Sequence record: MT708547.1 | Strand: one strand, 5' to 3' | Length of the DNA stretch: 64,000 nt | Part shown: in pieces, positions 5,090 through 20,054 of the stretch | Numbering within the stretch: position 1 is the stretch's first letter | How the letters are laid out: each line of letters begins with the position of its first letter | Notes under the pieces: model-generated | Told to the model about the DNA's origin: nothing | Seen by the model: the letters and a program-made list of their open reading frames with translations, nothing else | The model's database searches: none | Program-made: the position numbers and the translations under genes

Positions 5090-5104
5090 GTAAAGAAGTG
5101 TAAA
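5090..5104. promoter_or_regulatory. GTAAA-N5-GTAAA box 11 nt upstream of copy G -35
   Basis: GTAAAGAAGTGTAAA. Confidence 0.6.
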
Positions 5105-5307: not shown

Positions 5308-5375
5308 CATAGAGCGACGGGCAAGACAAGTAGTCAACCTGTAAGACATACGAAAACCAGGTGACGTTGCACTGA
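5308..5375 (+). ncRNA. Candidate ~70-nt three-way-junction RNA
   Basis: TTGACG-17-CATAAT (5273-5301); GCGACG/CGTTGC enclosing GAC/GTC and ACCTG/CAGGT. Confidence 0.5.
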
Positions 5376-5442
5376 TTCAGTACTGAATAATACATAACAT
5401 CTAAATGTTGACAGTACTGAAAAAATGTAGTATAATGATTCA

Positions 5443-5585
5443 CAGAAAGAAGCAATCCAGTAAGCATGGATTAGTGATAAACGTAGACCGGAATCACGAA
5501 AAACTTTCAAGGAAATACCCTTATATAATAAGGGAAGCGTTAAGCGTAGAACGTAAACGCGAAAGTCCTAGCCTTGAACTGAAAA
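5443..5585 (+). ncRNA. Candidate ~140-nt multibranch RNA
   Basis: TTGACA-17-TATAAT (5408-5436); AATCCA/TGGATT, GTGAT/ATCAC, TTCAAGG/CCTTGAA enclosing CCCTTA/TAAGGG and GCGTT/AACGC. Confidence 0.6.
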
Positions 5586-5708
5586 AGTAAACAAGGTAAT
5601 TTAAGAAAAAAGATTTAAAAAAGTAGTTGACAAGTACTAACGAGAATGAGATAATCTCTCTCGTTGAAACAAACAAACAATCTTAATCAAAACTTAAAGG
5701 TGAATAAA

Positions 5709-6209
5709 ATGGCTAAACTGAATTCTGTTGTTGTTGCTCTGATCGCTGGTGATGTTGCTGCTCTGAATGCTTCTTTCGCGTCGGTATCGATGGAAGATAT
5801 GAAAACTGTTCGCAATAACTTTAACGAGTTTTACTCGAAGTTTAAAGCGGCAAATGAAGCGGCGGAAGCGGCTGCAAAAGAGCGTAAAGCACAGATCGAA
5901 ACCGAAACGAAAGCCCTGGTAGATGCCCTGGTAACTGCTGGCCTGGATCTGGAAATGGCCGCCGAAGTCGCCAGCCAGAAAATGGCGGTTAAATATCCCG
6001 AACTGGCCGCGAAGCCGGAAACTGGTAAATCCTGGTCGTTTGAAACGGTATTCGTTAACCTCGACGGCGAAAAACTGGAAATTGGCACTAAAGGCAACAA
6101 AGGCAGCATGAAAGCACTTAAAGCGGCACGCGACGCAATTGCTGCCGGCGAGTACAAAGATCGTGCTGAATGGATCGCCGCACACGCCTGGACTGAAACC
6201 GAAGCGTAA
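5709..6209 (+). CDS. H-NS/MvaT-like nucleoid-associated protein
   Basis: Ala/Glu coiled coil ending ALVTAGLDLE (H-NS MLIADGIDPNE-like); C-term GEKLEIGTKGNK (MvaT GEVIETKGGN-like); high-expression codons. Confidence 0.5.
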   Translation: MAKLNSVVVALIAGDVAALNASFASVSMEDMKTVRNNFNEFYSKFKAANEAAEAAAKERKAQIETETKALVDALVTAGLDLEMAAEVASQKMAVKYPELAAKPETGKSWSFETVFVNLDGEKLEIGTKGNKGSMKALKAARDAIAAGEYKDRAEWIAAHAWTETEA

Positions 6210-6230
6210 TAATTCAGTCCAGTAATAATT

Positions 6231-6254
6231 AGCCTCCTAATTGGAGGCTTTTTA
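6231..6254 (+). terminator. Rho-independent terminator
   Basis: AGCCTCC-TAATT-GGAGGCT-TTTT. Confidence 0.85.
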
Positions 6255-6344
6255 TTTTTGTTCAAAAAAATATTTTAATTTATTTTTTGAACGGATTTCA
6301 AAAATCAGGTATAATAATAAAGGGTGTTAATTACAAAGACCCCC

Positions 6345-6400
6345 ATAGTGTTCGCTACGCTCACATAATGATCTTACTCGTTGCACTCGTAAGATCATTA
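6345..6400. repeat. Hairpins with TTCGCTACGCT / TCGTTGCACTC loops
   Basis: perfect 12-bp stem TAATGATCTTAC/GTAAGATCATTA 6366-6400. Confidence 0.75.
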
Positions 6401-6826
6401 TCCAATCGGCCTTTGGCGATTTCTTTTTGATTTCCTACGGAAACCAAACGAAACCACCAGCAAAGGCATATCCCTTTATTTGATTTAGTTAGTACTGCGA
6501 TTAATTAGTAATTCATTGCACTACATAGCAATCAATTCCTTTTGTAATAACTCACAGGACGCAATAAGACGCGTTTAAATGACTTCCCTATGTAATGCCA
6601 TTCCTTTTTAATAAGTCCTCTCAAAACGCGTTATAGTGCGTTATACGGCGTTTTTATAATACTCATCATTTCTTTTTCAAAAAGTACTTGCATTAATGAT
6701 CCAGTACTGTAATAATGTACTCACTGAAACGCAGTAAGTGAAGTAAGTAAATGCAAATAAGTACTTGACAAAGTGTTATAGTACTGGCATAATGAATACA
6801 CCAAAACGATTAAGGAGAAACACCAA

Positions 6827-7300
6827 ATGTTAAAACTTCATAAAGTACTCGATAACGCTGTTGTAACCGACTTTTTCCTGTCTCTTAACAACGAACCGAA
6901 AACAGCAAAAGAAATTGTTTTGAGTGGTTACGTTGCCAGCAAGTCAGAGATCGCACATTTGGAAAGTGCTTTCAAGTCCGGTGATGCATTATACAAAAAA
7001 ATGCAAAATACCATAGAAGATTTGCAATATATCAATTTACGTGATATTGTAGACAATAAATTGGATATTTCAGAAGAAGCACGCGAGAAGCTGGTAAGTA
7101 AATTATGTTACCGCTGCCGAACTGCAAAATGGAATCGCATTCGTAGTATTATTACTTACGATTTAAGTAATATCGATTCCAAATCAATTCTTGAACGTAT
7201 GTTATTAAATTTGCAAAGCAATGAATGGTTTTATACCGCTGCTCAATCTCATAGCGAAGAAATTGCATATATTCGTGATTATGTAATTTACAGCAAGTAA
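6827..7300 (+). CDS. Hypothetical protein
   Basis: cassette promoter + SD. Confidence 0.85.
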   Translation: MLKLHKVLDNAVVTDFFLSLNNEPKTAKEIVLSGYVASKSEIAHLESAFKSGDALYKKMQNTIEDLQYINLRDIVDNKLDISEEAREKLVSKLCYRCRTAKWNRIRSIITYDLSNIDSKSILERMLLNLQSNEWFYTAAQSHSEEIAYIRDYVIYSK

Positions 7301-7373
7301 TTAATAATTGATTAGCCATCATTAAAGCTGGTGGCTAACAGAATATTAATAACCTGTTGGGAGAATAATCTTT

Positions 7374-7643
7374 ATGAAAGGTATTAGTACTTTAATTGAT
7401 GCAAATACCCGCGTAGCTCGTTCAATGGTTGCTACGTCATTACGTGAATATACTGCAAGCGGGTATTTAGTATTCGCCGTAAATGGCAAATTGCAAGAAC
7501 GTAGAATAGCATTCAGTACTAAAGAGAATTGCCGTTATATTGTATTCAAGAAAGAAGCATACAAGATAGATTTACCAGCTAAACCGATCTCAGGCGGTTA
7601 CAATGTTGAAAGCCTTTATGAAAGGCCACCGTATACTGCGTAG
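7374..7643 (+). CDS. Hypothetical protein
   Basis: GGAG SD. Confidence 0.8.
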   Translation: MKGISTLIDANTRVARSMVATSLREYTASGYLVFAVNGKLQERRIAFSTKENCRYIVFKKEAYKIDLPAKPISGGYNVESLYERPPYTA

Positions 7644-7752
7644 AATCGATTTTGAGCGACTTTAATAAAAATATAGGGAATCATACTGATACCCGTTTAA
7701 AACAGTGTAGAAAGGCGTATAACGCGTTATACGCCGTAAGGGAGTGGATTCT

Positions 7753-7923
7753 GTGAAGCGTGAACAAGCTTTATTAACGCCAGAAGAGGCCCGCCGCTAT
7801 GAAATGTTTTCAAACCAGGAAACGATCAAAGCGGCACAATATAACCCGGTTGCTTGTACAGTACAAAGAAAAAATTTTGTACTGAATGAAGTAGAAAGTA
7901 TTATCAAATCAAATAAGGAGTAA
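7753..7923 (+). CDS. Hypothetical protein (56 aa, GTG start; not in ORF track)
   Basis: AAGGGAG SD, open to TAA 7921. Confidence 0.55.
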   Translation: MKREQALLTPEEARRYEMFSNQETIKAAQYNPVACTVQRKNFVLNEVESIIKSNKE

Positions 7924-7928
7924 ACACT

Positions 7929-8201
7929 ATGCAAAATAACCGCCCAATGATAAGAAATATGCTTTTCGTATTCCAGAAAAAAGTTAATGTAACTTCGGTA
8001 AATGGTGAACGTAAATTAAATGCGGCATTCGCCAAATATACACAAAGCAAAAACATCCATTACTTTTATCTTACTCTGAATGAGTTTAATGATCTGGTAA
8101 AAGAAATGTTTGTCAGTACTGAAATTGTTGCACCTGTAAGCACTGATATCATTCTAAAAGAATGGGAAAGTTTTTACAAAAGTTCTGTTGTAATCGCTTG
8201 A
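7929..8201 (+). CDS. Hypothetical protein
   Basis: AAGGAG SD. Confidence 0.85.
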   Translation: MQNNRPMIRNMLFVFQKKVNVTSVNGERKLNAAFAKYTQSKNIHYFYLTLNEFNDLVKEMFVSTEIVAPVSTDIILKEWESFYKSSVVIA

Positions 8202-8255
8202 CAACATAATCCAGTACTGGCATAATAACTACATAGACCACAAAGGAGAAACATA

Positions 8256-8435
8256 ATGGAAACTGTAATTGCTACTACCAAAATCAATGGACTGGATAAT
8301 GAAGTTTCATTGATTCATAAACAAAGCACATATGTTGTGTCATATGGTCACTATAGAACCTATCATGACACCATCAATGAAGCTTTTGTGGATTATATGA
8401 AAGCAATTGAAATTGCCTATGATGATTATCGTTAA
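8256..8435 (+). CDS. Hypothetical protein (59 aa; not in ORF track)
   Basis: cassette promoter + AAGGAG. Confidence 0.75.
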   Translation: METVIATTKINGLDNEVSLIHKQSTYVVSYGHYRTYHDTINEAFVDYMKAIEIAYDDYR

Positions 8436-8518
8436 AAGTACTTGCTTTAATCATTCAGTACTGTATAATGTATTACATCAAAGGGAATGAATGATTCATT
8501 CCCACATAACCAGGAGTA

Positions 8519-8881
8519 ATGACTATGTTTGATAAAGTTTTATTTTCTGATAACACCTCTGAAACCGAGATCCCGGAAGCGGTAAAAGCTTTTGCTCAAT
8601 TAGTTGCCCAGCGTCAAACTGATAATTACGACGGGCCTTATTCTTTCCTTACTGAGATTAGTAAAGGCAAAAAGTTTATTAAACTTATTCGCCGCGAGAA
8701 GTGGAAAGATAACGGACAATTAACAGGCGGATCGGTATTTGCCTTTATTGATCCCGATGGTAACATTTACAAATCAGCGACAGCTAAAGCACCAGCTAAA
8801 GGCATTCGCGGAAATGTTAACATCAACGGCGGCGGCGATGCAATCGGGCGTGATGGTTATATTCGTTACTTTCGTAATTGA
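8519..8881 (+). CDS. Conserved phage hypothetical protein (GKKFIK..SVFAFID..GNIYKxAxxKAPAKG.RGN family)
   Basis: motif common in T4-like phages; function unknown. Confidence 0.8.
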   Translation: MTMFDKVLFSDNTSETEIPEAVKAFAQLVAQRQTDNYDGPYSFLTEISKGKKFIKLIRREKWKDNGQLTGGSVFAFIDPDGNIYKSATAKAPAKGIRGNVNINGGGDAIGRDGYIRYFRN

Positions 8882-8932
8882 CAAATCTTTACAAATCCAG
8901 GGGTTGACTTCGGTCGCCCCTTTTGTTATTAT
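8878..8932 (+). promoter_or_regulatory. TTGAC-N5-TTTAC box + terminator/promoter hybrid
   Basis: GGGGTTGAC-TTCG-GTCGCCCC-TTTT containing TTGACT-17-TATTAT. Confidence 0.8.
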
Positions 8933-8937
8933 ATATT

Positions 8938-8995
8938 CATACCACAGAGCAAGTGGTTTAGCCCACAGGGTGCCGAGATGTATCTATAGTTTAAT
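8938..8995 (+). ncRNA. Short-RNA family copy H
   Basis: ACCAC-AGAGCAA-GTGGT; GCCC-ACA-GGGTGC-N6-GTATCTATAGTTT. Confidence 0.7.
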
Positions 8996-9039
8996 GATTT
9001 GAAGTACTGAAAAATAATTATAAAAAGTACTTGTTAGAC

Positions 9040-9061
9040 GTGAATTCTTTTAAGAATTCAC
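9040..9061. repeat. Perfect 10-bp palindrome inserted in promoter cassette
   Basis: GTGAATTCTT-TT-AAGAATTCAC. Confidence 0.8.
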
Positions 9062-9120
9062 TTGTATTTGTGATTCAGTACTGATATTATATATTCATAC
9101 CAATTAAGGAGATTATCCAA

Positions 9121-9282
9121 ATGAATACACAATATGTACCGGTGATGAATATCACTATCGGAAATGGTAAAGGTATGCATCGATTCAGTACTACAAAAAG
9201 TTATACTCAGCGTACATTAGAATCATGTGCAATTACCAAATGGCAAATAAAACATTACTTTACTACGGACAAGAAAAATTGA
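9121..9282 (+). CDS. Hypothetical protein (53 aa; not in ORF track)
   Basis: cassette promoter + AAGGAG. Confidence 0.65.
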   Translation: MNTQYVPVMNITIGNGKGMHRFSTTKSYTQRTLESCAITKWQIKHYFTTDKKN

Positions 9283-9391
9283 TTAAAAAAGTATTGACTG
9301 CGATACTCAAGTACTGTATTATAACTGGTATAGCGTTTGCACTAGCAGTAACCGTGGTTTTTGGTACTGTAATTATATTGGGGAACATATC

Positions 9392-9697
9392 ATGATTAAA
9401 AATATTGATGCATTCAATAAAGCATATCTTTATACCAGTACTTTTCGGAATAGCGAAGGAGATCCGGTTGAATTTAAAAATGTAGTACTGATCCGGCCTG
9501 GGTTCGATATTATTCATATCTCGAATACCTGGAATCAAGCTGCGGGCAATCGCTACACTATTGATAAAGAAATTTCAATAGAAGAAGCGTTAAAACTTCC
9601 ATCATTGCCGGATCGCTTATCCCTGGCTAGTCGTGTGGAACTGGTAGGCGATACTGCACAATATATTACGCATGAGTATGAATTTAAGTACCTATAA
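9392..9697 (+). CDS. Hypothetical protein
   Basis: ORF with purine-rich SD. Confidence 0.75.
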   Translation: MIKNIDAFNKAYLYTSTFRNSEGDPVEFKNVVLIRPGFDIIHISNTWNQAAGNRYTIDKEISIEEALKLPSLPDRLSLASRVELVGDTAQYITHEYEFKYL

Positions 9698-10073
9698 GTA
9701 CTTGACAATATAATTCAGTACTGTATAATGTATTACATCAAAGGGGATACATAGTGTATCCCCAATTAACAGGAGTAACCCATATGTCTAGTATCGTTAT
9801 TAATGAAACCTTATTATCTGTTACTTATGATGATGCGAGTATTTTTCCTGGTAATGATTATGGGTATGAAATTCCCGTAAAAGTTGAACTCGATCAAAGT
9901 GTCGGCAATCCCGATGATATTAAACGCACTATGGTGGTTAAAATTGGTGATATCACTTTATTGCCCAGTGATATTGATCATATCAAAAGTATGATTGATC
10001 GTGCAAATAATATCGCTGAAACCTTCAAATAAGTACTTGACAATATAATTCAGTACTGTATAATGTATTACAT
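9694..10073 (+). repeat. 45-bp perfect direct repeats (9694-9738, 10029-10073) flanking one gene
   Basis: ataagtacttgacaatataattcagtactgtataatgtattacat x2. Confidence 0.9.
9784..10032 (+). CDS. Hypothetical protein
   Basis: AGGAG SD. Confidence 0.85.
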   Translation: MSSIVINETLLSVTYDDASIFPGNDYGYEIPVKVELDQSVGNPDDIKRTMVVKIGDITLLPSDIDHIKSMIDRANNIAETFK

Positions 10074-10125
10074 AGAAAAGAGATTCCAGTACTGGAATCT
10101 CTAAGATAACCCAAGGAGATTAAAA

Positions 10126-10314
10126 ATGGCAGTAGTATACGGTTATATCAGCAACTATGATTTGACTTTCCGGGAAGTCGGTACTGAATTAGGTGCAAAG
10201 AATGCAGCAACGCGAAACGGCTCGACCCGCGTAGGATATCGCAGTAGTATTAATAATATGTATATTGAAACGCATATCCGCAACGATAAAAAGGGTAAAT
10301 GGGAAAAAGTGTAA
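10126..10314 (+). CDS. Hypothetical protein
   Basis: AAGGAG SD. Confidence 0.85.
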   Translation: MAVVYGYISNYDLTFREVGTELGAKNAATRNGSTRVGYRSSINNMYIETHIRNDKKGKWEKV

Positions 10315-10324
10315 TCTAATTCCA

Positions 10325-10339
10325 TTTACAAATCTTTAC
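10325..10339. promoter_or_regulatory. TTTAC-N5-TTTAC box 11 nt upstream of -35
   Basis: exact match. Confidence 0.6.
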
Positions 10340-10384
10340 AAAACCAGTACTTGATTTAATTATTGAGTACTGGTATTATATATT

Positions 10385-10437
10385 CATTGGCAGATAAGCC
10401 GCAGCCCACAGGGTGCCGAGATGTATCTATAGTTTAT
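10385..10437 (+). ncRNA. Short-RNA family copy I
   Basis: TTGATT-17-TATTAT (10351-10379); GGC-AGATAA-GCC; GCCCACAGGGTGCCGAGATGTATCTATAGTTT. Confidence 0.7.
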
Positions 10438-10704
10438 TGAATTGAAGTACAGAAAAATATTTCTTGCATAATTCATTTCTTATGATATAATAGTAATCAC
10501 ATAAATTAATTGGAGTGAACAAAAATGTTATTAGATTGGCTCAATACTTTATCCCCTGCCGCTGGCCGTCGCTGGGCTATCGGTTCGTCGGTTGCCATCG
10601 TTGTAGGCGTCATTGTACTTTTAGTGATGATTTTCTAAAAAGTACTTGCTTTAATGATTCAGTACTGTATAATGTACTTATACCAAATAACAGGAGTAAA
10701 ACCG

Positions 10705-11022
10705 ATGAAAGATGTAACTTTACCAGTAGTTCAAACTAACTTTGAAAACCAATTCCTGGCCGAAGTGTTCAAGATTGATAATGGCGTTGTATCAATCAAT
10801 TACGGTTTCAATAGCGGCGGTTATGAAAAATTCATTTATTTCGTTACTGCCGATGGTGGATGCCTGGCAATTGATACAGTACTGAATGAATTCAGTAAAG
10901 TAGATTTTAATGATGATAATGATCCTCAGTGGTATATCGTCGGCTATGACGTGAACTATGAAGATGAAGATCTTTATGATGATCATACTAATCAAAAAAT
11001 TGAATCTGCTTATGGGGAATAA
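10705..11022 (+). CDS. Acidic conserved phage protein (GGY..YFVTADGGxL..WYIVGYDVNYED..SAY)
   Basis: SD at 10692; acidic C-terminus. Confidence 0.8.
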   Translation: MKDVTLPVVQTNFENQFLAEVFKIDNGVVSINYGFNSGGYEKFIYFVTADGGCLAIDTVLNEFSKVDFNDDNDPQWYIVGYDVNYEDEDLYDDHTNQKIESAYGE

Positions 11023-11339
11023 AAATGATCATCGTACTATCAGAGAAAGAAAAGAAATTAATTCTTTCAGTACTGAAAGAATATCCCAGAAATATGCGGG
11101 AGCCGTTTGAAACAAATGGTGAATTCGAAGAGCATTTAAACGATATCGATTTATTGATATCCAAGATTGAATCACAATAGTGATGTACTGTAAAACGTCC
11201 TGTAATCGATTATGGGACGTTTTAAGGAATAGCACTATGATTTATTCAGTACTGTAAAAAAACGCTTGAAAATTGATTCCAGTACTGTATAATGTTTTAC
11301 ATAGGAAAATTATTCTCCCCATTATTAGGAATAAAGAAT

Positions 11340-11567
11340 ATGTTTTATCTTGGAACTGTTAAAGAAAATTCGAATGTAATTGAGGCGTCATTGATTTGTA
11401 CTAATAATGAAGTCGCTGGCTATGATTTTGCAAAAGAGCGATTCATGAAATATTACACTGGTGATAATTCAGTGTCATTCGATTTTGAACGTATCGGTGA
11501 TGGTGTTACAATTATGAAATTTGAAGATCTCCCTGAAATCGATTTTGATTTTGTCGTTACACTGTAA
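11340..11567 (+). CDS. Hypothetical protein
   Basis: cassette promoter. Confidence 0.75.
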   Translation: MFYLGTVKENSNVIEASLICTNNEVAGYDFAKERFMKYYTGDNSVSFDFERIGDGVTIMKFEDLPEIDFDFVVTL

Positions 11568-11666
11568 AAAAAGTACTTGCATAATTCTTTCAGTACTGTA
11601 TACTGTACTTATACCAAACAAAAGCAAATGGAATCAGTACTGATTCCCTGTAAAGGAGATAGACCA

Positions 11667-11918
11667 ATGTCAGATCGTATCACTCGCAAAATGGTAGCAG
11701 ATAAAGTTGCTGGGCTGAATCTTGCTATTGACCGTCGTGGATTGCCTGAAAAATATCAGGTAGTACTGGAAGATGGTAAATTCAATATTGAATTACAGCC
11801 GTCTCATGTTTATACTAAACCAACAGCGGTACAAAAGTATTTGAGTACACGAGAAGCATATTTTTATCTTAAAGGTATGTTTCAAATTCTTCTCGACAAT
11901 GTACCACATAAAGATTAA
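11667..11918 (+). CDS. Hypothetical protein
   Basis: AAGGAG SD. Confidence 0.85.
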   Translation: MSDRITRKMVADKVAGLNLAIDRRGLPEKYQVVLEDGKFNIELQPSHVYTKPTAVQKYLSTREAYFYLKGMFQILLDNVPHKD

Positions 11919-11920
11919 AG

Positions 11921-11951
11921 AAAAAGGGGAGACAATGAGTCTCCCTTTTTT
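11921..11951. terminator. Bidirectional terminator
   Basis: A-tract-GGGAGAC-loop-GTCTCCC-T-tract. Confidence 0.85.
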
Positions 11952-12020
11952 GTATTCAGTACTATATATATTTTAGATACAATTTGGCACCCTGTGGGTT
12001 AGTAGCTTGTTCTGCTTTAT
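11925..12020 (-). ncRNA. Short-RNA family copy J
   Basis: - strand TTGACA-17-TATAAT (12055-12027); AGC-AGAACAA-GCT; ACCC-ACA-GGGTGC-N6-GTATCTA; ends at bidirectional terminator. Confidence 0.75.
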
Positions 12021-12146
12021 GTAGTAATTATATGATAAAGCTGGTGGCTTGTCAACACTTATTTTAAAATAAAAAGTACTGAATAGTACTTGCAAAAAGT
12101 ATTCAGTACTGTATAATGTTTATATTGAGATTAAGGAGTACTGACT

Positions 12147-12686
12147 ATGTTAATCAAAATGTATCACGGTTCTAATAATTTTGATCATCGCCGTGGATAT
12201 CTGGGCGGAAAACCAGGTAATTTTCATATGGGTTTTGGACTATATCTAACTAACTCTTATCGCTGGGCTGATAATTATGGGCGACGTCATTATGAGTTAG
12301 ATTTAGATCTTTGTAGTACTGGTGCCGCACATAATGTATGGATTCCTACTAAACACTTTATGGAATTCATAAGAGTATATTGTACTAAAAAGTTTTTTAC
12401 AATGTGCTGTAAAGAATTTAAAGACCGTGAATCTTTGAATGTAGAACGCGTTGAATTGCTTATTATCAATATGGAAAGGCATGTTACTAAAATCGCTAAA
12501 CCATTTGCTGAATTCGTCGCCGCCTGGGGTTGTACGCATAGCATTGAAATATCCGGTAACTATGGTGGTGTTTGCTTGCGGCTTTATGATTTCAGTACTA
12601 TAAAGAATTGTATCATAAGCCAGGAAACGCAAGATTTTTATTATCCAGATGAATTGACAAGATATCCTCAAAAAAACTTGTATTAA
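12147..12686 (+). CDS. Putative ADP-ribosyltransferase-fold protein
   Basis: MYHGS..F..G.GLYLTN...A..YG pattern of H-Y class ARTs. Confidence 0.5.
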   Translation: MLIKMYHGSNNFDHRRGYLGGKPGNFHMGFGLYLTNSYRWADNYGRRHYELDLDLCSTGAAHNVWIPTKHFMEFIRVYCTKKFFTMCCKEFKDRESLNVERVELLIINMERHVTKIAKPFAEFVAAWGCTHSIEISGNYGGVCLRLYDFSTIKNCIISQETQDFYYPDELTRYPQKNLY

Positions 12687-12737
12687 TGATTCAGTACTGA
12701 TATAATGTATTAAATTAATCAGGAGGAATTATCTTAA

Positions 12738-12866
12738 ATGAATAACCGTCAATTGATGATCGATGCATCTCGTTTTCGTTCAAAAGAAGAAAAGAGAAGT
12801 TGCATTAAATGGGTTTTGTCAACTTTCATTATTGGATTACTTATTGTTGCTTTTGTTTATAGTTAG
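12738..12866 (+). CDS. Small membrane protein (42 aa; not in ORF track)
   Basis: AGGAGG SD; C-terminal hydrophobic helix. Confidence 0.65.
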   Translation: MNNRQLMIDASRFRSKEEKRSCIKWVLSTFIIGLLIVAFVYS

Positions 12867-13246
12867 TACTTGACAACTGATTTCAGTACTGTATAATGTT
12901 TATCAAAGGGAATGAATAATTCATTCCCAAATAATCAAAGGAGTTTTGCCATGATCTATATTATCAAAGTATCCCCGACTGTAGGCAAATCAGAAGTTGT
13001 AGCCGTCATCACTTCCCTGGAAGCGAAAGATCTTCATACGCCGTTTAATGTATGGGTGGAGGATAATTTCGGCCAATTCAGTACTGCTGAATATATCGAA
13101 CAATTCGCCGTACCGGATACTGGTAAAATCAAAGTGGATCGTATCCTGGATTTTGATAACAGTAATTATTTTTAAAAGTACTTGACAACTGATTTCAGTA
13201 CTGTATAATGTTTATCAAAGGGAATGAATAATTCATTCCCAAATAA
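12865..13246 (+). repeat. 70-bp perfect direct repeats (12865-12934, 13177-13246) flanking one gene
   Basis: identical promoter+hairpin cassette. Confidence 0.9.
12951..13175 (+). CDS. Hypothetical protein
   Basis: AAGGAG SD. Confidence 0.85.
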   Translation: MIYIIKVSPTVGKSEVVAVITSLEAKDLHTPFNVWVEDNFGQFSTAEYIEQFAVPDTGKIKVDRILDFDNSNYF

Positions 13247-13262
13247 ACAAAGGAGTTTTATC

Positions 13263-13409
13263 ATGAAAGAATATATCTTTGAGGTAACTTTCACCTTCGG
13301 CCCGCATCAACTGATCCGCTCTTCTGGTTATAACCGCGAACAAGCATTCAGCAACCTTCGCCGTATGTACCCCAGTGTCGTGACCTGGGTCAAATGTGAA
13401 GAAGCATAA
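13263..13409 (+). CDS. Hypothetical protein (48 aa)
   Basis: AAGGAG SD. Confidence 0.75.
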   Translation: MKEYIFEVTFTFGPHQLIRSSGYNREQAFSNLRRMYPSVVTWVKCEEA

Positions 13410-13489
13410 AATAATTAGTCAGTACTATTGACAACGCGTGATAGTACTGCTATAATTATTTTAACTTATACGGAATGGAGTTAAAACAA

Positions 13490-13726
13490 ATGTTCAGTGT
13501 CAGCAAACAAGGCGACAAATTTCTGGTTCAATACCATCATTTTGATCTGGTATACACTCAGCCAGATTGTGTATTCAGTACTCAGGAAGGTGCCGAAAAG
13601 CACAAAAAAGCCTTGATCGAAAATAGCAACAGTGGTACATTAGATTTCATCCAACAGTACTGGAATGAATCTAAGCTGCTGGATGGATATTCCAATACAG
13701 TTTATTATGTAGGCATGACTGATTAA
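13490..13726 (+). CDS. Hypothetical protein
   Basis: GGAG SD. Confidence 0.8.
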   Translation: MFSVSKQGDKFLVQYHHFDLVYTQPDCVFSTQEGAEKHKKALIENSNSGTLDFIQQYWNESKLLDGYSNTVYYVGMTD

Positions 13727-13828
13727 TCGGGAGTACTGCTAATGTATATACCAATTATCATACCGTTAGCAGTACTGTTAATCGCCGCCGTCATCTGCGA
13801 ACATTATCATTTGTTAGGAATGTAAACT

Positions 13829-13999
13829 ATGATTCAATGTGAATTGTCAGTACTGATCACGCTGTTCTATATGTTGGGACAAAAGAAACAATATATTTCT
13901 GGTGATAATGCATTATTGTATCAATCATTAGACCAATGGCAACGCACTGAATTAAGCAATGCATGGGCGAAAGGTTACAACGATAGTACTGCAAAATAA
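13829..13999 (+). CDS. Hypothetical protein (56 aa; not in ORF track)
   Basis: AGGA SD. Confidence 0.5.
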   Translation: MIQCELSVLITLFYMLGQKKQYISGDNALLYQSLDQWQRTELSNAWAKGYNDSTAK

Positions 14000-14008
14000 T
14001 TTAAAAAA

Positions 14009-14041
14009 GGGGTTGACACAGGTCAGCCCTTTTGTTATTAT
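14009..14041 (+). promoter_or_regulatory. Terminator/promoter hybrid
   Basis: GGGGTTGAC-ACAG-GTCAGCCC-TTTT containing TTGACA-17-TATTAT. Confidence 0.8.
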
Positions 14042-14046
14042 TAGTA

Positions 14047-14100
14047 CATAGCAAGAACAATGCTCAAGCCCACAGGGTGCCGAAGTGTATCTATAGTTTA
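14047..14100 (+). ncRNA. Short-RNA family copy K
   Basis: AGCA-AGAACAA-TGCT; GCCC-ACA-GGGTGC-N6-GTATCTATAG. Confidence 0.7.
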
Positions 14101-14218
14101 TGTAGTACTGAATCATTAATTTTTCTTGACAATTGGTTTAGTACTGGATATAATAGCCGCCATTGAATACAGAACGGGAAATTAGTACTAATTTCCCTTA
14201 CAGGAGGATTTTAAAAAA

Positions 14219-14485
14219 ATGGCCTATCATACACCACATAGACATTTCATTGATAAACGCGGTATGGCTTTTAAAGCAATGAGTGACAATCGTAACACAC
14301 AAATGTACTTTAAAGATATGACGTTAGAAGAAGCTATTGAAGCTGTAAGGAATGATCGTAAGCTTTCCAAGAAAGTTGCATCAGTACTTAATGCTTTTTG
14401 GTTTGAACGTACTACCAACAAAGAATACAAAGAAAAGATGATTGCACTTGGTAAAGTAGTACGAGAAGAAAAATTATATCTTTAA
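14219..14485 (+). CDS. Hypothetical basic protein
   Basis: AGGAGG SD. Confidence 0.85.
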   Translation: MAYHTPHRHFIDKRGMAFKAMSDNRNTQMYFKDMTLEEAIEAVRNDRKLSKKVASVLNAFWFERTTNKEYKEKMIALGKVVREEKLYL

Positions 14486-14580
14486 GTACTTGACTATGTG
14501 ATTCAGTACTGTATACTGTACTTATACCAAACAAAAGTAAAGGGAATCAGTACTGATTCCCTGTAAAGGAGATAGACCAA

Positions 14581-14688
14581 ATGAAACAAGCAAAATTTAA
14601 TTCAGAAATAAAAGCAGCAAAAGCACACAAAGTACAGTTAGTAGTACTGGTTATTGTATCAATCTTTTTGCTGTGCAACATCGGCTAA
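14581..14688 (+). CDS. Small membrane peptide (35 aa; not in ORF track)
   Basis: full cassette + AAGGAG; hydrophobic C-terminus. Confidence 0.6.
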   Translation: MKQAKFNSEIKAAKAHKVQLVVLVIVSIFLLCNIG

Positions 14689-14768
14689 AATAATTATTAC
14701 AGTACTATTGACAACACGTGATAGTACTGGTATAATTACTTTACCAAATCAAAAAGGAGTAACCAAAA

Positions 14769-15044
14769 ATGCGGATTAAACTTACTAATGATGAGATTCA
14801 TTCAGTACTTACTACCAATATGCAGGACTGGAAAAAGTACGCTGATATCGAAGAAGTCCAGGAACTCAATGATGATTTGAGTGTAGATGAAATTATCACT
14901 ATTTGCTCATCTCAATTCTTTGATGATATCAATGATGAAGAGCAAGATGTATTTGATATCATGGAAAAACATTTTATTGCGTATGATGTTTTCCCGTATA
15001 CTCGCCAGGCTTATATTCTTATTCACAACATTTATAACAAATAA
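14769..15044 (+). CDS. Small acidic protein
   Basis: 20 D/E vs 7 K/R in 91 aa. Confidence 0.85.
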   Translation: MRIKLTNDEIHSVLTTNMQDWKKYADIEEVQELNDDLSVDEIITICSSQFFDDINDEEQDVFDIMEKHFIAYDVFPYTRQAYILIHNIYNK

Positions 15045-15056
15045 GGAATAATAATC

Positions 15057-15422
15057 ATGGAAAAAGAATTTAAAATCAAATACAATATCAGTACTGATTG
15101 TGGTTTTGAAGTACCAGAAGAAGATCAAGAACGTCTTAATGATGTTATTATGATTGACATTTCAAATAAAATCATTCAAGGCTACCGCGAAGGTGAATTG
15201 TGTGAATCGTTGATGGATCAATTCGATGAAGTGGAAACATTTTATCGTGGCTGGTGGAGCATCGAAGAAGTTCACAAAGTACACGAATACCGTGTATTCT
15301 GGATTAACGGCGTTAATGATATCGAAGATATCATTGTAAAAGAAAGTAGTGAATCCGCCGCCATTCAGTACTTTAAAGATCACTACCCCAACAAACGTTA
15401 TCACCATTTAGAAAAAATTTAA
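15057..15422 (+). CDS. Acidic hypothetical protein
   Basis: AAGGA SD. Confidence 0.85.
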   Translation: MEKEFKIKYNISTDCGFEVPEEDQERLNDVIMIDISNKIIQGYREGELCESLMDQFDEVETFYRGWWSIEEVHKVHEYRVFWINGVNDIEDIIVKESSESAAIQYFKDHYPNKRYHHLEKI

Positions 15423-15485
15423 AAAGTACTTGACACCTAATATCAGTACTGACATAATTACTTTAAACAAACAAGGTATTACAAA

Positions 15486-15872
15486 ATGAAAAAGATTATT
15501 CTGGCTGTTACTCTGATGGTTTCCGCTTCCTCTGTGATGGCTGTTAATCTCAATGAATTAACTGATTTCAGTAATACTATGCGTGATCGTTTCAGTGTAC
15601 CAGATCACATTGCAAAAGCCGAACAAGCTCGCAACGCTGGCATGAAATGCAATGCATTGATGACCGATGAGAAAACGGGTAAACAGTTTAAATCACAATT
15701 CAGTACTGGCCCGGAGGATAAACCGATGGTATCAGGTAACGATCTGACTTATCATGAAGAAGATGATACCGGTAGTACTACACTGGTTATCAATAAAAAT
15801 ACTGGTAAAGGTTTTATTACTATTATGGACGCAAGCCAGGTAATTGCAACTGGTAACGTAATTTGCAAATAA
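15486..15872 (+). CDS. Exported (signal peptide) protein
   Basis: MKKIILAVTLMVSASSVMA; two Cys. Confidence 0.8.
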   Translation: MKKIILAVTLMVSASSVMAVNLNELTDFSNTMRDRFSVPDHIAKAEQARNAGMKCNALMTDEKTGKQFKSQFSTGPEDKPMVSGNDLTYHEEDDTGSTTLVINKNTGKGFITIMDASQVIATGNVICK

Positions 15873-15957
15873 AATACTTGACAACATAATCCAGTACTGA
15901 TATATTAATACGCATAGGGGCAAACAACTTGCCCCACTAAACAAAAGGAACTACCAA

Positions 15958-16314
15958 ATGATTACTAAATTCTACGCTACTCGTGAACTGGCTCGGAACG
16001 TCGCTCGTGAAGAAGGTGAAACCTTCAAAGATATGGGTAAAGATTCCCCTGCTGGTCAACGCTGGGCAGTACTGTTCCGCGAGGTCAAAGACCTGGTAGA
16101 AAACGCTAAAGCCGTTGAAATGAACGTTCCCACCAAAGAAGATAAAGAACTGACTGATGCCCTCGCCGCTGCATTCTCCGCGATGGATAAAGCCGCAGCG
16201 GTAGTACTGAAAGTACCGGAATTTGTTACCAGAAAAGTGCATTCAGTACTACAAAATAAATTCAATGGTAAACAGGTTCAAGTGTTTACTAAACGTAAAA
16301 TTCCGGTCATGTAA
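15958..16314 (+). CDS. Hypothetical protein
   Basis: cassette + SD; followed by terminator. Confidence 0.85.
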   Translation: MITKFYATRELARNVAREEGETFKDMGKDSPAGQRWAVLFREVKDLVENAKAVEMNVPTKEDKELTDALAAAFSAMDKAAAVVLKVPEFVTRKVHSVLQNKFNGKQVQVFTKRKIPVM

Positions 16315-16337
16315 AATCTGACTATTACAGTACTAAC

Positions 16338-16360
16338 AAAGGGGCTTCAATGCCCCTTTA
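16338..16360. terminator. Hairpin terminator
   Basis: AAAGGGGC-TTCAAT-GCCCCTTT. Confidence 0.75.
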
Positions 16361-16422
16361 AACGTCCTGTAAGCCATTCTAAGAGGTTTTACATGAAAAA
16401 GGTACAATTACACAAAGGAGTA

Positions 16423-16641
16423 ATGAAAGTTCATTATAATGCCCCGCAACGCATTATAGATAGATCCATTGAACTAGCCAATCAATACCTAGCTGGTGGA
16501 TTAACTCCCAGGAAGTTAAGCAACGGGAAGTTATATGTAATCAACGTTGATACTAATAATCGTATAGTAATCAAAGGTGAAAGCATATCACTGTATGAAC
16601 ATCAACAGTATAACAAGAAAGTAAAAAATATTAGTAGATAA
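16423..16641 (+). CDS. Possible ParE/RelE-like small toxin-fold protein
   Basis: ..Y..G...PRKL....Y.INV...RIV......L.EH..YN pattern; AAAGGAG SD. Confidence 0.35.
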   Translation: MKVHYNAPQRIIDRSIELANQYLAGGLTPRKLSNGKLYVINVDTNNRIVIKGESISLYEHQQYNKKVKNISR

Positions 16642-16720
16642 GTATTGACAACTGATTTCAGTACTGCCATAATGTATACATACAAGGCAATACCGCCTAA
16701 TAACATAGGAGTAACTGAAA

Positions 16721-17143
16721 ATGAAAAAATCAACTAAAATTGTCTTAGGTGTATTTGTTGTTCCGGCAGTCGCCTTTTTTACTTGTGCTATGATTTTTGG
16801 TGATGCTTCTCGGGTTGCCGCAAAAATCGAAAAAGAAAAACAAGTCCAGGCACAAGTCAAGAAAGAAGAAAAACCAAATTATAACACTGTATGGGAAGCA
16901 ATTTGCCATACCAGTACAGGTAAACGAATTTCCATCCTTACAGCAATGAATAATGGAAAATCAATCGTCGGAAACGAATACATGGAAGTGACTTCCAGTA
17001 CTGGTAAAGAATTCGTAATGACGAACTATAATAACAATAATGTTGCAATTGTTACACAGGATTTTAAAGGTAATGCAGTACTTGAATATCATACGGAATA
17101 TGAAGTAATATTTGCAAAATGCACGTTTGAATGGGGTGCATAA
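16721..17143 (+). CDS. N-terminally membrane-anchored protein
   Basis: hydrophobic IVLGVFVVPAVAFFTCAMIF. Confidence 0.8.
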   Translation: MKKSTKIVLGVFVVPAVAFFTCAMIFGDASRVAAKIEKEKQVQAQVKKEEKPNYNTVWEAICHTSTGKRISILTAMNNGKSIVGNEYMEVTSSTGKEFVMTNYNNNNVAIVTQDFKGNAVLEYHTEYEVIFAKCTFEWGA

Positions 17144-17163
17144 AAATAAAAAAAAATCAAAAA

Positions 17164-17198
17164 GGGGGGTTGACATATGTCAGCCCCTTTGCTATTAT
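17164..17198 (+). promoter_or_regulatory. Terminator/promoter hybrid
   Basis: GGGGTTGAC-ATAT-GTCAGCCCC-TTT containing TTGACA-17-TATTAT. Confidence 0.8.
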
Positions 17199-17203
17199 TA
17201 ATA

Positions 17204-17252
17204 TCAAGAAAACAAGCTAACCCACAGGGTGCATAAATGTATCTATAGTTTA
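17204..17252 (+). ncRNA. Short-RNA family copy L
   Basis: ACCC-ACA-GGGTGC-N6-GTATCTATAGTTT; stem 1 degenerate. Confidence 0.6.
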
Positions 17253-17324
17253 TTAAAGAATTTTAGTACTTGACAACGTAGTACAGTAGTACTAAAATAT
17301 CTACATACAAAGGAGATTACCAAA

Positions 17325-17909
17325 ATGAACAAACATCTTAAAGTACTGAATAAATGTAAATCCAATACCGAAATGTTACTGTACTGTTACAAAAATTTAA
17401 TTAAACTCGGGAGAGGTTCATCCAGGACAGTATTTTTGTTAACAAAAAATAAAGTACTGAAAGTTGCTCATAACCATATTGGCAACCAACAGAATACAGC
17501 AGAAATCACTGCATGGTTGTATATTGATTATGACCGCTATTATAATAAACGTTTTTTCGCTAAAGTGTTCCCTGATATGTCGCATTTCAAAGATGTATAC
17601 ATAGTACAGGAGTACTGCGACAATATCAGTACTAAAGAAGCGAAGCCATATATTGAACATTACAAAGATTCACGTACAATTAAAAATGAAAGGGCTAAAC
17701 GCTTCCACACGGCGTTAAGAGATGTAGATAATACCCTTAACTATAAAACGCTGGTGGACTTAAACATGGGCAATATAGGCCGTTCTGTAAGGGGTGCAAT
17801 CAAAATCCGTGATTATGGTTTGTCTGAACATATTGCTAAACAGTACCGAGAAGCCCGCTTCCAATACCAGAAGCTCAAAAGTATTAGTAAAATAAGTATT
17901 GATTTATAA
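17325..17909 (+). CDS. Minimal Ser/Thr protein kinase-like protein
   Basis: LGRGSSRTVF (Gly loop), VLKVA (Lys), AE (alphaC), YIVQEY (hinge), DLNMGNIG (catalytic D..N), IRDYG (DFG-like). Confidence 0.75.
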   Translation: MNKHLKVLNKCKSNTEMLLYCYKNLIKLGRGSSRTVFLLTKNKVLKVAHNHIGNQQNTAEITAWLYIDYDRYYNKRFFAKVFPDMSHFKDVYIVQEYCDNISTKEAKPYIEHYKDSRTIKNERAKRFHTALRDVDNTLNYKTLVDLNMGNIGRSVRGAIKIRDYGLSEHIAKQYREARFQYQKLKSISKISIDL

Positions 17910-17975
17910 TTTCAGTACTGGTATAGTACTTTCACAGGGGAGATAATCTCCCCAAATCACAAAGGAGATTTTACC

Positions 17976-18338
17976 ATGAGTACTAAACCATTTGTAACCA
18001 CTCGTTCCAATCTGACTGAGATCTATGTACATGGTGGATATGAGGAAACGTATGTCACTGGTATTATGGTAGAATTCCATCAGGGTTATCGGTTTATGTT
18101 GGTAGATTCAGAAATCTATCATACCCAACAAGATAAACATGGTTATGTCAATAAGTACTCCACCGATGAAGTACTGAAACGCCTGGATAATAAAATTAAA
18201 CAAATTCAAAAACATCTTGACAACGGCGGAAAACTTAATCATTTACTTTGGGATAGCTTAGATCCCTGCTACGGTTCGGATGCATATGGTAAAAGCCGTG
18301 ACACTGCAATGAAAGTACTTAAAGATTATTTCTTTTAA
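17976..18338 (+). CDS. Hypothetical protein
   Basis: cassette + SD. Confidence 0.85.
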   Translation: MSTKPFVTTRSNLTEIYVHGGYEETYVTGIMVEFHQGYRFMLVDSEIYHTQQDKHGYVNKYSTDEVLKRLDNKIKQIQKHLDNGGKLNHLLWDSLDPCYGSDAYGKSRDTAMKVLKDYFF

Positions 18339-18429
18339 GTATTGACATAGGTTATCAGTACTGTATAATGTTTTGCATACACAAGAGATTCCAGTGCTGG
18401 AATCTCTAATCTAAAGGAGAATACCGAAA

Positions 18430-18711
18430 ATGATTACTGGTCACATTACTAACTATGCAAAACGCCGCGATGTAGAAATCGAAGTACTGAAAGCTGGCGA
18501 AGTTGACGATGACGCCCAGGTATGGTTCTACACCGCAGACAATGATTGTGAACCAGTACTGATGTACCTGATTAATAATGATGGTTCTCTTACTTATCGT
18601 AGCAAACTGATGAAGTCACTGGAAGATATGCCAGCACATATCAATAATAAAGAAGTACTGAAACGCGTAATCTGCTACATCTCAGACCAGCACAAAGCGG
18701 ATATGATGTAA
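18430..18711 (+). CDS. Hypothetical protein
   Basis: cassette + SD. Confidence 0.85.
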   Translation: MITGHITNYAKRRDVEIEVLKAGEVDDDAQVWFYTADNDCEPVLMYLINNDGSLTYRSKLMKSLEDMPAHINNKEVLKRVICYISDQHKADMM

Positions 18712-18724
18712 TCTTTACAAATAT

Positions 18725-18758
18725 GGGGGTTGACTAATGTCAGCCCTTTTGGTATTAT
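18725..18758 (+). promoter_or_regulatory. Terminator/promoter hybrid
   Basis: GGGGTTGAC-TAAT-GTCAGCCC-TTTT containing TTGACT-17-TATTAT. Confidence 0.8.
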
Positions 18759-18763
18759 ATATT

Positions 18764-18815
18764 CAATCCAGCGAAATGGTCTAACCCTCAAGGGTGCCGA
18801 TATGTATCTATAATT
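18764..18815 (+). ncRNA. Short-RNA family copy M
   Basis: CCA-GCGAAA-TGG; ACCC-TCAA-GGGTGC-N6-GTATCTA. Confidence 0.65.
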
Positions 18816-18961
18816 TAATGATTTGAAGTACTGAAAAATAATTATAAAAAGTACTTGTATTTGTGATTCAGTACTGCCATAATATATCCATACAAGGGAA
18901 ACACATTGTTTCCCGATAATCCACAGCAATAGTGCTGGTGGATGAACCAGGAGTAATAACC

Positions 18962-19258
18962 ATGCAAGACAAATCAATTCATGTTCAAGTAGTTTCAAGC
19001 CGTGGCTATGATGATGTAGTACTGGATATCATGGTTAAAGATCTGCGGGACTATGCAACCATTGCACGTCATATCATGGTTAACTCCATTTGTATCAGTA
19101 CTGGTGCAGACCTGGAAGCTAACCGCTTACATATAGAGGAACATCTATACAAAGCACGTATGAATGATAGCAGTGTATTCATCATTGAAGGTGCTGAGGG
19201 TAAAGAGTATACCGTATACCTTCGCCAGTACCTGGAAGCAGAAAAAGAAGAAGATTAA
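18962..19258 (+). CDS. Hypothetical protein
   Basis: AGGAG SD. Confidence 0.85.
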   Translation: MQDKSIHVQVVSSRGYDDVVLDIMVKDLRDYATIARHIMVNSICISTGADLEANRLHIEEHLYKARMNDSSVFIIEGAEGKEYTVYLRQYLEAEKEED

Positions 19259-19353
19259 TTTATAAAAAGTACTTGCTTTAATAGTTCAGTACTGTATACT
19301 GTTTATCAAGGGGAAGCATAGGGCTTTCCCGTTACACTCAAAGGAGATACACC

Positions 19354-19752
19354 ATGTTTACTATCACTTCTCGCCAGGATGTTCTGTACGTTGCTAAAAC
19401 TTTTGGTCTGGAAGCACTCGATCATATCATTCGCAACAGTACAATGAATGCTGATGCAAATGGGATTATCATTGATACTCGGGCATGGGCCGCCAATGAA
19501 GTCATTGCCATCGAGCATGTTAACGATGGTAACAATGTCTATGAAGTGGATGCATGTTTCAATGCTGTTAATGTAGCAGGTATGTATATCACTGGCATTG
19601 ATGATATTACTATCATCCGTTCGGGTATGGGTAACTTCTCCATGCCTTTACGTTCAGCAATGGAAAGTAAAGAGATCAGTACAGAACAATGTGCAAATTT
19701 AATCAATGAGATTACCGCACGTAATGAAGCTGCTGCTATCCTTTACCCGTAG
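19354..19752 (+). CDS. Hypothetical protein
   Basis: cassette + SD. Confidence 0.85.
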   Translation: MFTITSRQDVLYVAKTFGLEALDHIIRNSTMNADANGIIIDTRAWAANEVIAIEHVNDGNNVYEVDACFNAVNVAGMYITGIDDITIIRSGMGNFSMPLRSAMESKEISTEQCANLINEITARNEAAAILYP

Positions 19753-19771
19753 TAGTTCAGTACAGTACTGT

Positions 19772-19805
19772 AAGCCCATAGGATAAACCCTGTGGGCTTT
19801 TTCTT
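19772..19805 (+). terminator. Terminator closing the cassette region
   Basis: AAGCCCATAGG-loop-CCTGTGGGCTT-TTT. Confidence 0.8.
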
Positions 19806-20054
19806 TATGGGTAATATGATTGGGTAGGTTATGGTATAAGTACTGTCAGAATTGATTACAGGAGGATAACAGAAAAATTGATTAATTGATTTCAGTACTG
19901 AACTGTCATTGAGAAAAAATATTAGTCAAAAAATAATTGACTTAGAAAATAATTAAACCAATACCTTATACTGTATGAAATAGTTTCGGACTGTTATTAT
20001 ATATTTGACTAAGTAAAGTGGTATTAGGCTTAGCACTTTTATATAGTATTACAG

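Follow-up and report, generated by a model that had tools for sequence, protein, structure and literature searches.

The gene considered here invites comparison with gp0.7 of phage T7 (T7K), a kinase reported in 2026 to act early, to be hyper-promiscuous and of dual specificity, to disarm DNA-linked defences and to phosphorylate nearly the whole host proteome (PMC13645617). In the same work, the promiscuity was tied to a DPV motif standing in place of DFG, and a C-terminal shut-off domain that binds DNA was linked to the bias for substrates that bind nucleic acids. Distant 'jumbophage' homologues of T7K devoid of the shut-off domain were indicated in Munch and G17, named by phage only, and the role of these kinases was left open (PMC13645617). 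Phage kinases have recently come into focus, and RaK2-like jumbo phages carry a different, uncharacterised family of mini-kinases, located in a terminal-repeat block that is probably expressed early. The present analysis concerns a member of this family, gene 043 (CPT_Muenster_043) of Klebsiella phage Muenster, a RaK2-like jumbo myovirus of the genus Alcyoneusvirus with a genome of 346,937 bp. The window, that is the whole stretch of 64,000 nucleotides that was analysed, was identified by megablast as bases 1-64000 of the Muenster record MT708547.1, with identical coordinates.

By predicted fold and by residues, the product of gene 043 is a real, intact and stripped-down protein kinase. The open reading frame (ORF) begins with ATG, runs uninterrupted through 194 codons and occupies exactly the annotated coding sequence (CDS; Table 1); the protein has a mass of 22.96 kDa, an isoelectric point (pI) of 9.75 and a net charge of +17. 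A first-pass annotation of this DNA, made from the letters alone, had described a minimal kinase of 194 residues encoded by a jumbo phage, and this was borne out, as the reading frame is exact, the kinase-like fold is accompanied by the complete set of catalytic residues, and the protein is extremely short. The kinase call as such was already known. It was present in GenBank before this analysis, where the gene is labelled 'putative protein kinase' on the basis of the depositors' HHpred match, and kinase-like names are borne also by the orthologues in K64-1, Munch, fENko-Kae01, ph0011 and Turkey3/5, most other records reading 'hypothetical protein'.

The protein belongs to the family phrog_4301, labelled 'unknown function' in the PHROG library, whose hidden Markov model (HMM) it matched with an expectation value (E) of 4.5e-36, residues 2-182 being aligned to profile positions 15-186 of 225. 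Orthologues were found in RaK2, K64-1, 121Q, PBECO4, G17, phAPEC6, Munch, 7t3, fENko-Kae01, EJP2, XbC2 and fHe-Yen9; identity to the gene 043 protein is 94-97% within Alcyoneusvirus and about 36% to the proteins of Asteriusvirus and Munch-like phages. These members have the same length and the same terminal-repeat or left-end position as gene 043, and no difference of substance was noted between them.

All kinase motifs that had been named at first reading are present: G29-R-G31-S-S-R34 (the Gly-loop), K46, E60, D145-x4-N150 and D163-Y-G165. In an alignment of 34 family members, with a mean column identity of 27%, residues R34, K46, G53, Q56, E60, G152, D163 and G165 are invariant (34/34), and at least 90% of the relatives share G31, S32, S33, V36, V44, A48, N57, G157 and Y164. 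Within the jumbo-phage subgroup of 13 members D145 is invariant and N150 occurs in at least 90%, while more distant relatives carry a D-x5-[S/H/Q]-[W/F]-G variant in place of D-x4-N, the canonical Asn being lost. The Gly-loop retains the first two glycines of GxGxxG, the invariant Arg34 occupying the position of the third, and Leu-Val instead of His-Arg precedes D145 (the residue adjacent to it is Val144), which places the protein among non-RD kinases. The GSSR Gly-loop, the G-x2-Q-N-x2-E signature, DYG and a basic core are the hallmarks of the family, as read from its sequences. Judged from both the sequence and the structural model, the set of motifs in the gene 043 protein goes far beyond chance.

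Similarity to known kinases could be followed also at the level of profiles. The Pkinase family of Pfam (PF00069) matched residues 22-175 on profile positions 1-153 of 263 (E 2.7e-5), and it was matched by 9 of the 34 relatives at E<=0.01. When the 34-member family profile was used as a query, it retrieved 399 distinct kinase sequences from PDB, the best being PAK1 (E 2.3e-6), with an alignment collinear from the Gly-loop through ten residues past DFG. The family profile was needed for this result, as a phmmer search of PDB with the single protein gave no match at E<=10. Comparison with the RaK2 orthologue yielded a ratio of non-synonymous to synonymous substitution rates (dN/dS) of 0.18, and thus selection on gene 043 is purifying; the 11 substitutions that separate the two proteins are clustered in the D-E loop and the C-terminal tail, and none of them (0/11) falls on a motif residue.

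An AlphaFold2 model built on an alignment of 32 sequences reached a mean predicted local distance difference test score (pLDDT) of 91.3 and a predicted template modelling score (pTM) of 0.84. Its N-terminal part consists of helices 2-10 and 14-24, strands 26-30, 34-38 and 43-48 (the last bearing K46) and helix C (residues 51-70), followed by strand 92-96, helix D (103-110), helix E (122-138), the beta7-beta8 hairpin (151-154/159-161), DYG and a terminal helix (168-193). Only 29 residues, forming this single helix, follow G165, and the confidence of the model drops toward the end. The first-pass annotation had spoken of a kinase with almost no C-lobe, which is accurate insofar as the predicted protein is cut directly after DYG and, according to both the model and the end of the Pfam alignment, has no activation segment with its APE motif and no helices F-I (subdomains VIII-XI); the protein retains, however, helices D and E together with the catalytic loop and the beta7-beta8 hairpin.

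Foldseek comparison of the model with PDB gave 78 matches at E<=0.001, and among the matches listed 50 of 50 are kinases, the leading ones with probabilities of 0.98-1.0. The best of them were Legionella Lpg2603 (7.6e-6), MEK1, BRAF, PRPK/Bud32, RIO1/2 and Shigella OspG, and the template modelling scores (TM-scores) to PDB kinases were modest (0.28-0.53). In BFVD, the RaK2 orthologue matched with a TM-score of 0.95, and behind it came a large cloud of phage proteins, 140-250 residues long and for the most part uncharacterised, that have the same reduced fold. Compared with Hanks-type Ser/Thr kinases (PF00069, with PAK1/STE20 best in PDB), the gene 043 protein contains subdomains I-VII in collinear order with all catalytic residues, but is devoid of subdomains VIII-XI and of His-Arg, bears Arg for the third Gly and scores below the gathering threshold. 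The Shigella effector OspG (chains of 169-171 residues), PRPK/Bud32, RIO1/2 and Lpg2603 resemble it as very small folds with a reduced C-lobe (Foldseek probability 1.0, E 7.6e-6 to 6e-4), but TM-scores of 0.35-0.53, identity of 11-19%, no detected sequence relation and other biological settings set them apart.

As to the time of expression, gene 043 lies inside the direct terminal repeat of 20,030 bp that PhageTerm predicts, of which the deposited record contains the left copy only; we infer, from the PhageTerm annotation only, two copies of the gene per virion DNA. On the plus strand of the repeat there are 24 promoters with at least 11 of 12 consensus matches, against 0.57 in shuffled sequences (maximum 3); at the same threshold, 8 promoters were counted in the other 44 kb of the window. 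An extended motif, GTACTTG-(10-16 nt)-AGTACT, occurs in 22 copies, all on the plus strand and all between 1.4 and 19.3 kb. In the related phage CBB, RpoD-like promoters ahead of short ORFs were read as a mark of the early region (PMC5259590). Because the terminal repeat is so densely furnished with promoters, and because gene 043 has a near-consensus promoter of its own, there are strong grounds to expect that it is transcribed early by host sigma70 RNA polymerase. A literature search for transcript data on RaK2-like phages returned none. The earlier placement of the gene in the first-expressed region stands as far as the near-consensus promoter and the promoter-saturated repeat are concerned, the early timing being deduced from promoter density. 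In G17, vB_Ec-M-J and fENko-Kae01 the orthologue is likewise situated inside the terminal repeat, and in Munch it lies at the left end, at 17.8 kb. The flanking genes are partly syntenic and 50-70% identical, vs 36% for the kinase; no conserved adjacent partner gene was found, synteny being evident at the level of the block only.

The promoters of the terminal repeat have a further feature, namely AGTACT palindromes which flank the -35 hexamer and precede the -10 hexamer. The frequency of AGTACT falls from 7.8 per kb in the repeat to 2.6 per kb over the 44 kb that follow. A phage regulator that switches off the early genes may use this sequence as its operator.

In the light of these results, the explanation we prefer is that gene 043 encodes an active, early, non-RD protein kinase which modifies host and/or phage proteins, and on the sequence and model data we would assign it a probability of about 0.55. 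According to this proposal, host sigma70 RNA polymerase would transcribe the gene from its own promoter soon after entry of the terminal-repeat DNA. The 23-kDa protein would bind Mg-ATP by means of the Gly-loop, the K46-E60 pair, N150 and D163, as the conserved residues and the confident model of the kinase fold suggest, and D145 would act as the catalytic base in phosphorylation of hydroxyl residues of host and/or phage proteins. Since the predicted protein is non-RD and has no activation segment, the kinase is probably constitutively active or activated by a partner, rather than switched by loop phosphorylation; and since helices F-I, the platform for peptide binding, are missing from the model, the choice of substrates is probably loose or driven by an adaptor. 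The strongly basic surface of the jumbo-phage subgroup may bias the kinase to nucleic-acid-associated targets. The likely role, drawn from the parallel with T7 gp0.7 and not from family membership, is host takeover or counter-defence.

Several observations weigh against this interpretation. The Pkinase score of 24.2 bits is below the gathering threshold of 31.7 bits, and neither PADLOC nor NCBIfam gave a match for the gene 043 protein. The His-Arg of HRD and the Lys at D+2 are absent, and the third glycine of the Gly-loop is replaced by Arg. Lys at D+2 is typical of Ser/Thr kinases, and in the gene 043 protein this position of the catalytic loop is Asn; given these three deviations, the canonical catalytic pattern cannot simply be assumed. 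The Ser/Thr specificity named in the first-pass annotation is putative, and T7K itself has dual specificity. Our search of the literature found no experimental study of the activity, timing or substrates of phrog_4301. Moreover, the proteins of the terminal repeat show no evident depletion of Ser, Thr and Tyr, the signature reported for T7K phages: the joint share of these residues is 17.8% vs 20.7% in the 20-64 kb block (p 4e-4), with most of the gap due to Tyr, but the window offers no late-protein baseline and the comparison is thus poor and uninformative.

A separate problem is the relation of gene 043 to T7K, to which the first-pass annotation had considered it analogous. For this comparison, T3 gp0.7 from NC_047864.1, the reference genome cited in PMC13645617, was used as the T7K query and its relatives were gathered. 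According to its AlphaFold2 model, the kinase core of T3 gp0.7 ends just after DPV (D218, P219 and V220, all invariant in the T7K alignment), and a disordered linker leads from there to the helical shut-off domain. The models of the Muenster kinase and T3 gp0.7 have the same order of secondary-structure elements and the same truncated topology, and it is this part of the proposed analogy that holds. Both proteins are encoded by phages, with early expression established for T7 gp0.7 and deduced from promoters for gene 043; both are non-RD, have a D-x3-G-N catalytic loop and an N-terminal helical extension (about 70 residues in T7K vs about 25 in the gene 043 protein), and end their core after the DFG-equivalent. 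They differ in that T7K possesses DPV and the shut-off/DNA-binding domain, whereas DYG and no such domain are found in the gene 043 protein. Membership in the gp0.7 family, on the other hand, had to be rejected, as the search for PHROG 2828, an HMM of T3/T7-type kinases, profile alignment with hhalign and reciprocal Foldseek comparison were all negative. The gene 043 kinase plausibly works like gp0.7 as far as the predicted architecture is concerned, while standing outside its family.

The same set of data bears on the possibility that the gene 043 kinase is a very distant offshoot of T7K which has kept the hyper-promiscuous, anti-defence activity. Such a view overlaps with the one we prefer, and we consider it unlikely. 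It draws on the shared catalytic loop, on the non-RD character, truncated end and helical extension common to both proteins, and on the hhalign comparison of the two family profiles, which are collinear over 144 columns from the Gly-loop to the DFG-equivalent Asp (E 4.2e-4); the probability of this alignment is, however, just 34%. Neither the Muenster nor the Munch mini-kinase matched PHROG 2828 at E<=10, and the HMM of 20 T3/T7-type kinases did not match the Muenster kinase, its best E-value against a mini-kinase being 0.15, for the G17 homologue (in a set of 435 ORFs). The structural neighbourhoods overlap in a common cloud of small phage kinases, the Foldseek lists of the top 50 BFVD neighbours of the Muenster and T3 models having nine entries in common, e.g. 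CBB A0A1L2CVI5 and Yaphecito A0A7T3TLW4; but the RaK2 orthologue is not among the top 50 neighbours of the T3 model, and in a comparison with gp0.7 that had been suggested as a check, neither protein was among the best structural neighbours of the other. Further, DYG occupies the place of DPV, to which promiscuity was tied (PMC13645617), and the shut-off/DNA-binding domain is absent. Finally, Asteriusvirus and Munch-like phages have retained both genes, each at its own locus, and this speaks for distinct roles.

This last point follows from a tblastn search with the T3 kinase domain, which revealed in jumbo phages a gene of 213 residues, about 28% identical to that domain (Table 1). In Asteriusvirus and Munch-like phages this T7K-like gene is accompanied by the phrog_4301 kinase at another locus, and it is located far from the terminal repeat. 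Among the best 45 tblastn matches there was no RaK2-like Klebsiella phage, and no second kinase was detected in the 64-kb Muenster window with either the mini-kinase or the T7K HMM. Comparison of the 213-residue kinases with the mini-kinase profile by hhalign gave a probability of 2.9%. Like gene 043, they are small stand-alone kinases of RaK2-like jumbo phages without a shut-off domain; unlike it, they represent another gene at another locus than the phrog_4301 kinase. The 213-residue genes fit the 'jumbophage T7K homologues' of PMC13645617. Identification of gene 043 itself with those homologues was rejected, as the T7K-like kinase of Munch and G17 is a different gene, that of 213 residues.

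The two kinase lineages differ also in charge. The mini-kinases of jumbo phages are uniformly basic (pI 9.2-10.1, net charge from +6 to +20, spread along the chain), whereas three T3-type relatives have acidic kinase domains (pI about 5) and carry the basic charge in their shut-off domains (pI about 11). Because the core is basic in the mini-kinase and acidic in the T3-type kinase, there is a hint that nucleic-acid proximity could be built into the mini-kinase itself. One may extend this to a second lineage of early phage kinases apart from T7K, with a basic core, which would broadly phosphorylate nucleic-acid-associated host proteins as a general means of counter-defence, would be the sole such kinase detected in Alcyoneusvirus, and would have its amplified form in the tandem relatives described below; in so complete a form we hold this picture to be rather doubtful.

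Another explanation would make the gene 043 product a small-molecule phosphotransferase or ATPase of the Bud32/PRPK, RIO, Kdo/WaaP or aminoglycoside kinase kind, the target being a nucleotide signal, an envelope sugar or a partner complex. The highest TM-score in PDB is indeed to PRPK/Bud32 (0.53), RIO kinases were matched as well, and the half of the C-lobe that binds peptides is absent; there were also a weak match to ABC1 (E 0.049) and a match to AceK by a single member. The TM-scores are, however, modest in every class of kinases, so that ranking by fold does not discriminate, and every significant sequence signal points to protein kinases of the canonical type (Pkinase in 9 of 34 relatives; PAK, STE20 and MST in PDB), with no RIO, Kdo/WaaP, APH or choline-kinase family found at E<=10. 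We thus see such an activity as distinctly improbable. That the protein is a pseudokinase or an ATP-binding scaffold, blocking a host factor without phosphotransfer, might be suspected from its very reduced architecture, its non-RD character with the altered Gly-loop (R34) and the distant relatives deprived of the canonical Asn of D-x4-N, but pseudokinases usually lose at least one of the core catalytic residues, and with K46, E60 and D163 invariant in 34 relatives of such low mutual identity, D145 invariant in the jumbo subgroup and selection purifying, this is very improbable.

If the preferred reading of gene 043 as an active protein kinase is correct for the family, phrog_4301 would provide a compact second model of a kinase working without a substrate-binding lobe, and a candidate general factor of host takeover or counter-defence in phages that are considered for Klebsiella therapy. 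If the kinase is an ordinary, specific one, the result is a routine annotation that the database already holds. What is new here is that phrog_4301, as judged from profiles and models, is separate from the T7K lineage and has a truncated architecture in common with gp0.7, and that, on sequence comparison, both kinase families co-exist in some jumbo genera, a T7K-like gene not being detected in Alcyoneusvirus (best 45 tblastn matches; 64-kb window). The sequence hallmarks of the family given above are new as well.

Table 1. Coordinates of gene 043, its motifs and associated features in the window, and of T7K-like kinase genes in other phages
Feature	Position	Strand	Basis
CDS CPT_Muenster_043 / QOE32215.1, minimal eukaryotic-like protein kinase by predicted fold and residues, phrog_4301	17325..17909	+	ORF, GenBank annotation, phrog_4301, Pkinase, AlphaFold2, Foldseek, dN/dS
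Gly-loop, residues 29-36, G-R-G-S-S-R-T-V	17409..17432	+	Conservation in 34 relatives; aligned to PAK1 Gly-loop
beta3 Lys46 (VAIK-equivalent)	17460..17462	+	Invariant in 34 relatives; aligned to PAK1 VAIK Lys
alphaC Glu60 in G53-x2-Q56-N57-x2-E60 signature	17502..17504	+	Invariant; helix 51-70 of model
Catalytic loop D145-L-N-M-G-N150	17757..17774	+	Conservation in jumbo-phage subgroup; aligned to PAK1 HRDIKSDN
D163-Y164-G165, DFG-equivalent metal-binding motif	17811..17819	+	Conservation; codons read from sequence
Single C-terminal helix, residues 168-193, sole predicted structure after DYG	17826..17903	+	DSSP on model; per-block pLDDT 77, 65, 54
Ribosome-binding site AAGGAG, 9 nt before ATG	17310..17315	+	Sequence, plus annotated ribosome-binding site 17311-17315
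Own sigma70-type promoter of gene 043, TTGACA-17 nt-TAAAAT, 11/12 matches, AGTACT-flanked	17270..17298	+	Sequence
Direct terminal repeat, 46 short genes, nearly all on + strand, most with individual sigma70-type promoter	1..20030	+	PhageTerm-based annotation; promoter counts
Upstream repeated element, about 100 nt, one of five copies in the window	17146..17262	+	Terminator-like and promoter-like calls; cross-genus conservation
T7K-like 213-residue kinase ELP22_0605, Escherichia phage BAU.Micro_ELP-22	L005:2411-3052		tblastn
T7K-like 213-residue kinase, G17	50408-51046		tblastn
T7K-like 213-residue kinase, Munch	326294-326929		tblastn

The spread of the family was followed in larger collections. 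A HMMER search over 1.84 billion representative proteins gave 959 matches at E<=1e-3, including full-length relatives of 170-235 residues, and a word-indexed search for homologues retrieved 4 close relatives only. With the Gly-loop pattern [LI]GxGSSR[ITV]V[FY], 80 viral contigs of IMG/VR, 4-435 kb in length (L010-L089), were retrieved that encode relatives, and since they carry such genes the family, on sequence grounds, extends beyond the jumbo phages of enterobacteria. One relative (P0040) is located on a 94-kb phage-like contig beside genes for an exonuclease, NUDIX, AAA and Cpn60 proteins. Six metagenomic relatives (P0010, P0012, P0018, P0020, P0021 and P0022), of 490-923 residues, are built of complete mini-kinase units, with two to four of them in tandem in one polypeptide and each unit matching the family HMM nearly end to end; these proteins gave no Pfam match at E<=0.001. 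P0012 is encoded at L007:204-2975, on a contig of only 4.8 kb.

Gene 043 had been described as lying directly downstream of a short RNA, designated L. A conserved repeated element is indeed present there (Table 1), while the RNA product is putative. The copy upstream of the kinase comprises a G+C hairpin (17163-17190) enclosing a -35 hexamer, then a T-run and a -10 hexamer, with a promoter-like site at 17170-17198 and a conserved box at 17219-17253; from its sequence, the repeated element combines the look of a terminator with that of a promoter. No terminator was found between copy L and the kinase promoter, and for this reason a discrete short RNA remains putative. Neither Rfam nor ARAGORN assigned the element to a family or a tRNA, and RNAalifold supported the first hairpin only, the second predicted stem being invariant. 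The five copies in the window (8880-9010, 10325-10455, 13989-14119, 17146-17276 and 18706-18836) each contain a G+C hairpin with a -35 hexamer inside it, a T-run, an extended -10, a variable stretch and then a nearly invariant box of about 34 nt. The element occurs also, in 3-8 copies per genome and with 74-84% nucleotide identity, across Asteriusvirus, Munch-like phages, GAP32, CBB, EJP2 and fHe-Yen9, and is better conserved than the nearby proteins (36-70% identical). The annotated short coding sequences of genes 018 (8814-9002) and 034 (14032-14166) overlap copies of the element, and gene 018 overlaps gene 017 as well; both may be over-calls.

Among the other products of the window, the predicted proteins of the densely packed block 20030-64000 have an unusually high share of Tyr, 7.7% compared with 5.2% in those of the terminal repeat. 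GenBank annotation further indicates a YeeU-like antitoxin (3055-3666), a YafQ-like RNase toxin (16393-16641), an ADP-ribosyltransferase (48161-48571), a SpoT-like HD phosphohydrolase (59712-60329) and a T4-type RNA ligase (62583-63728). Together these genes fit an arsenal for host manipulation and counter-defence around the kinase.

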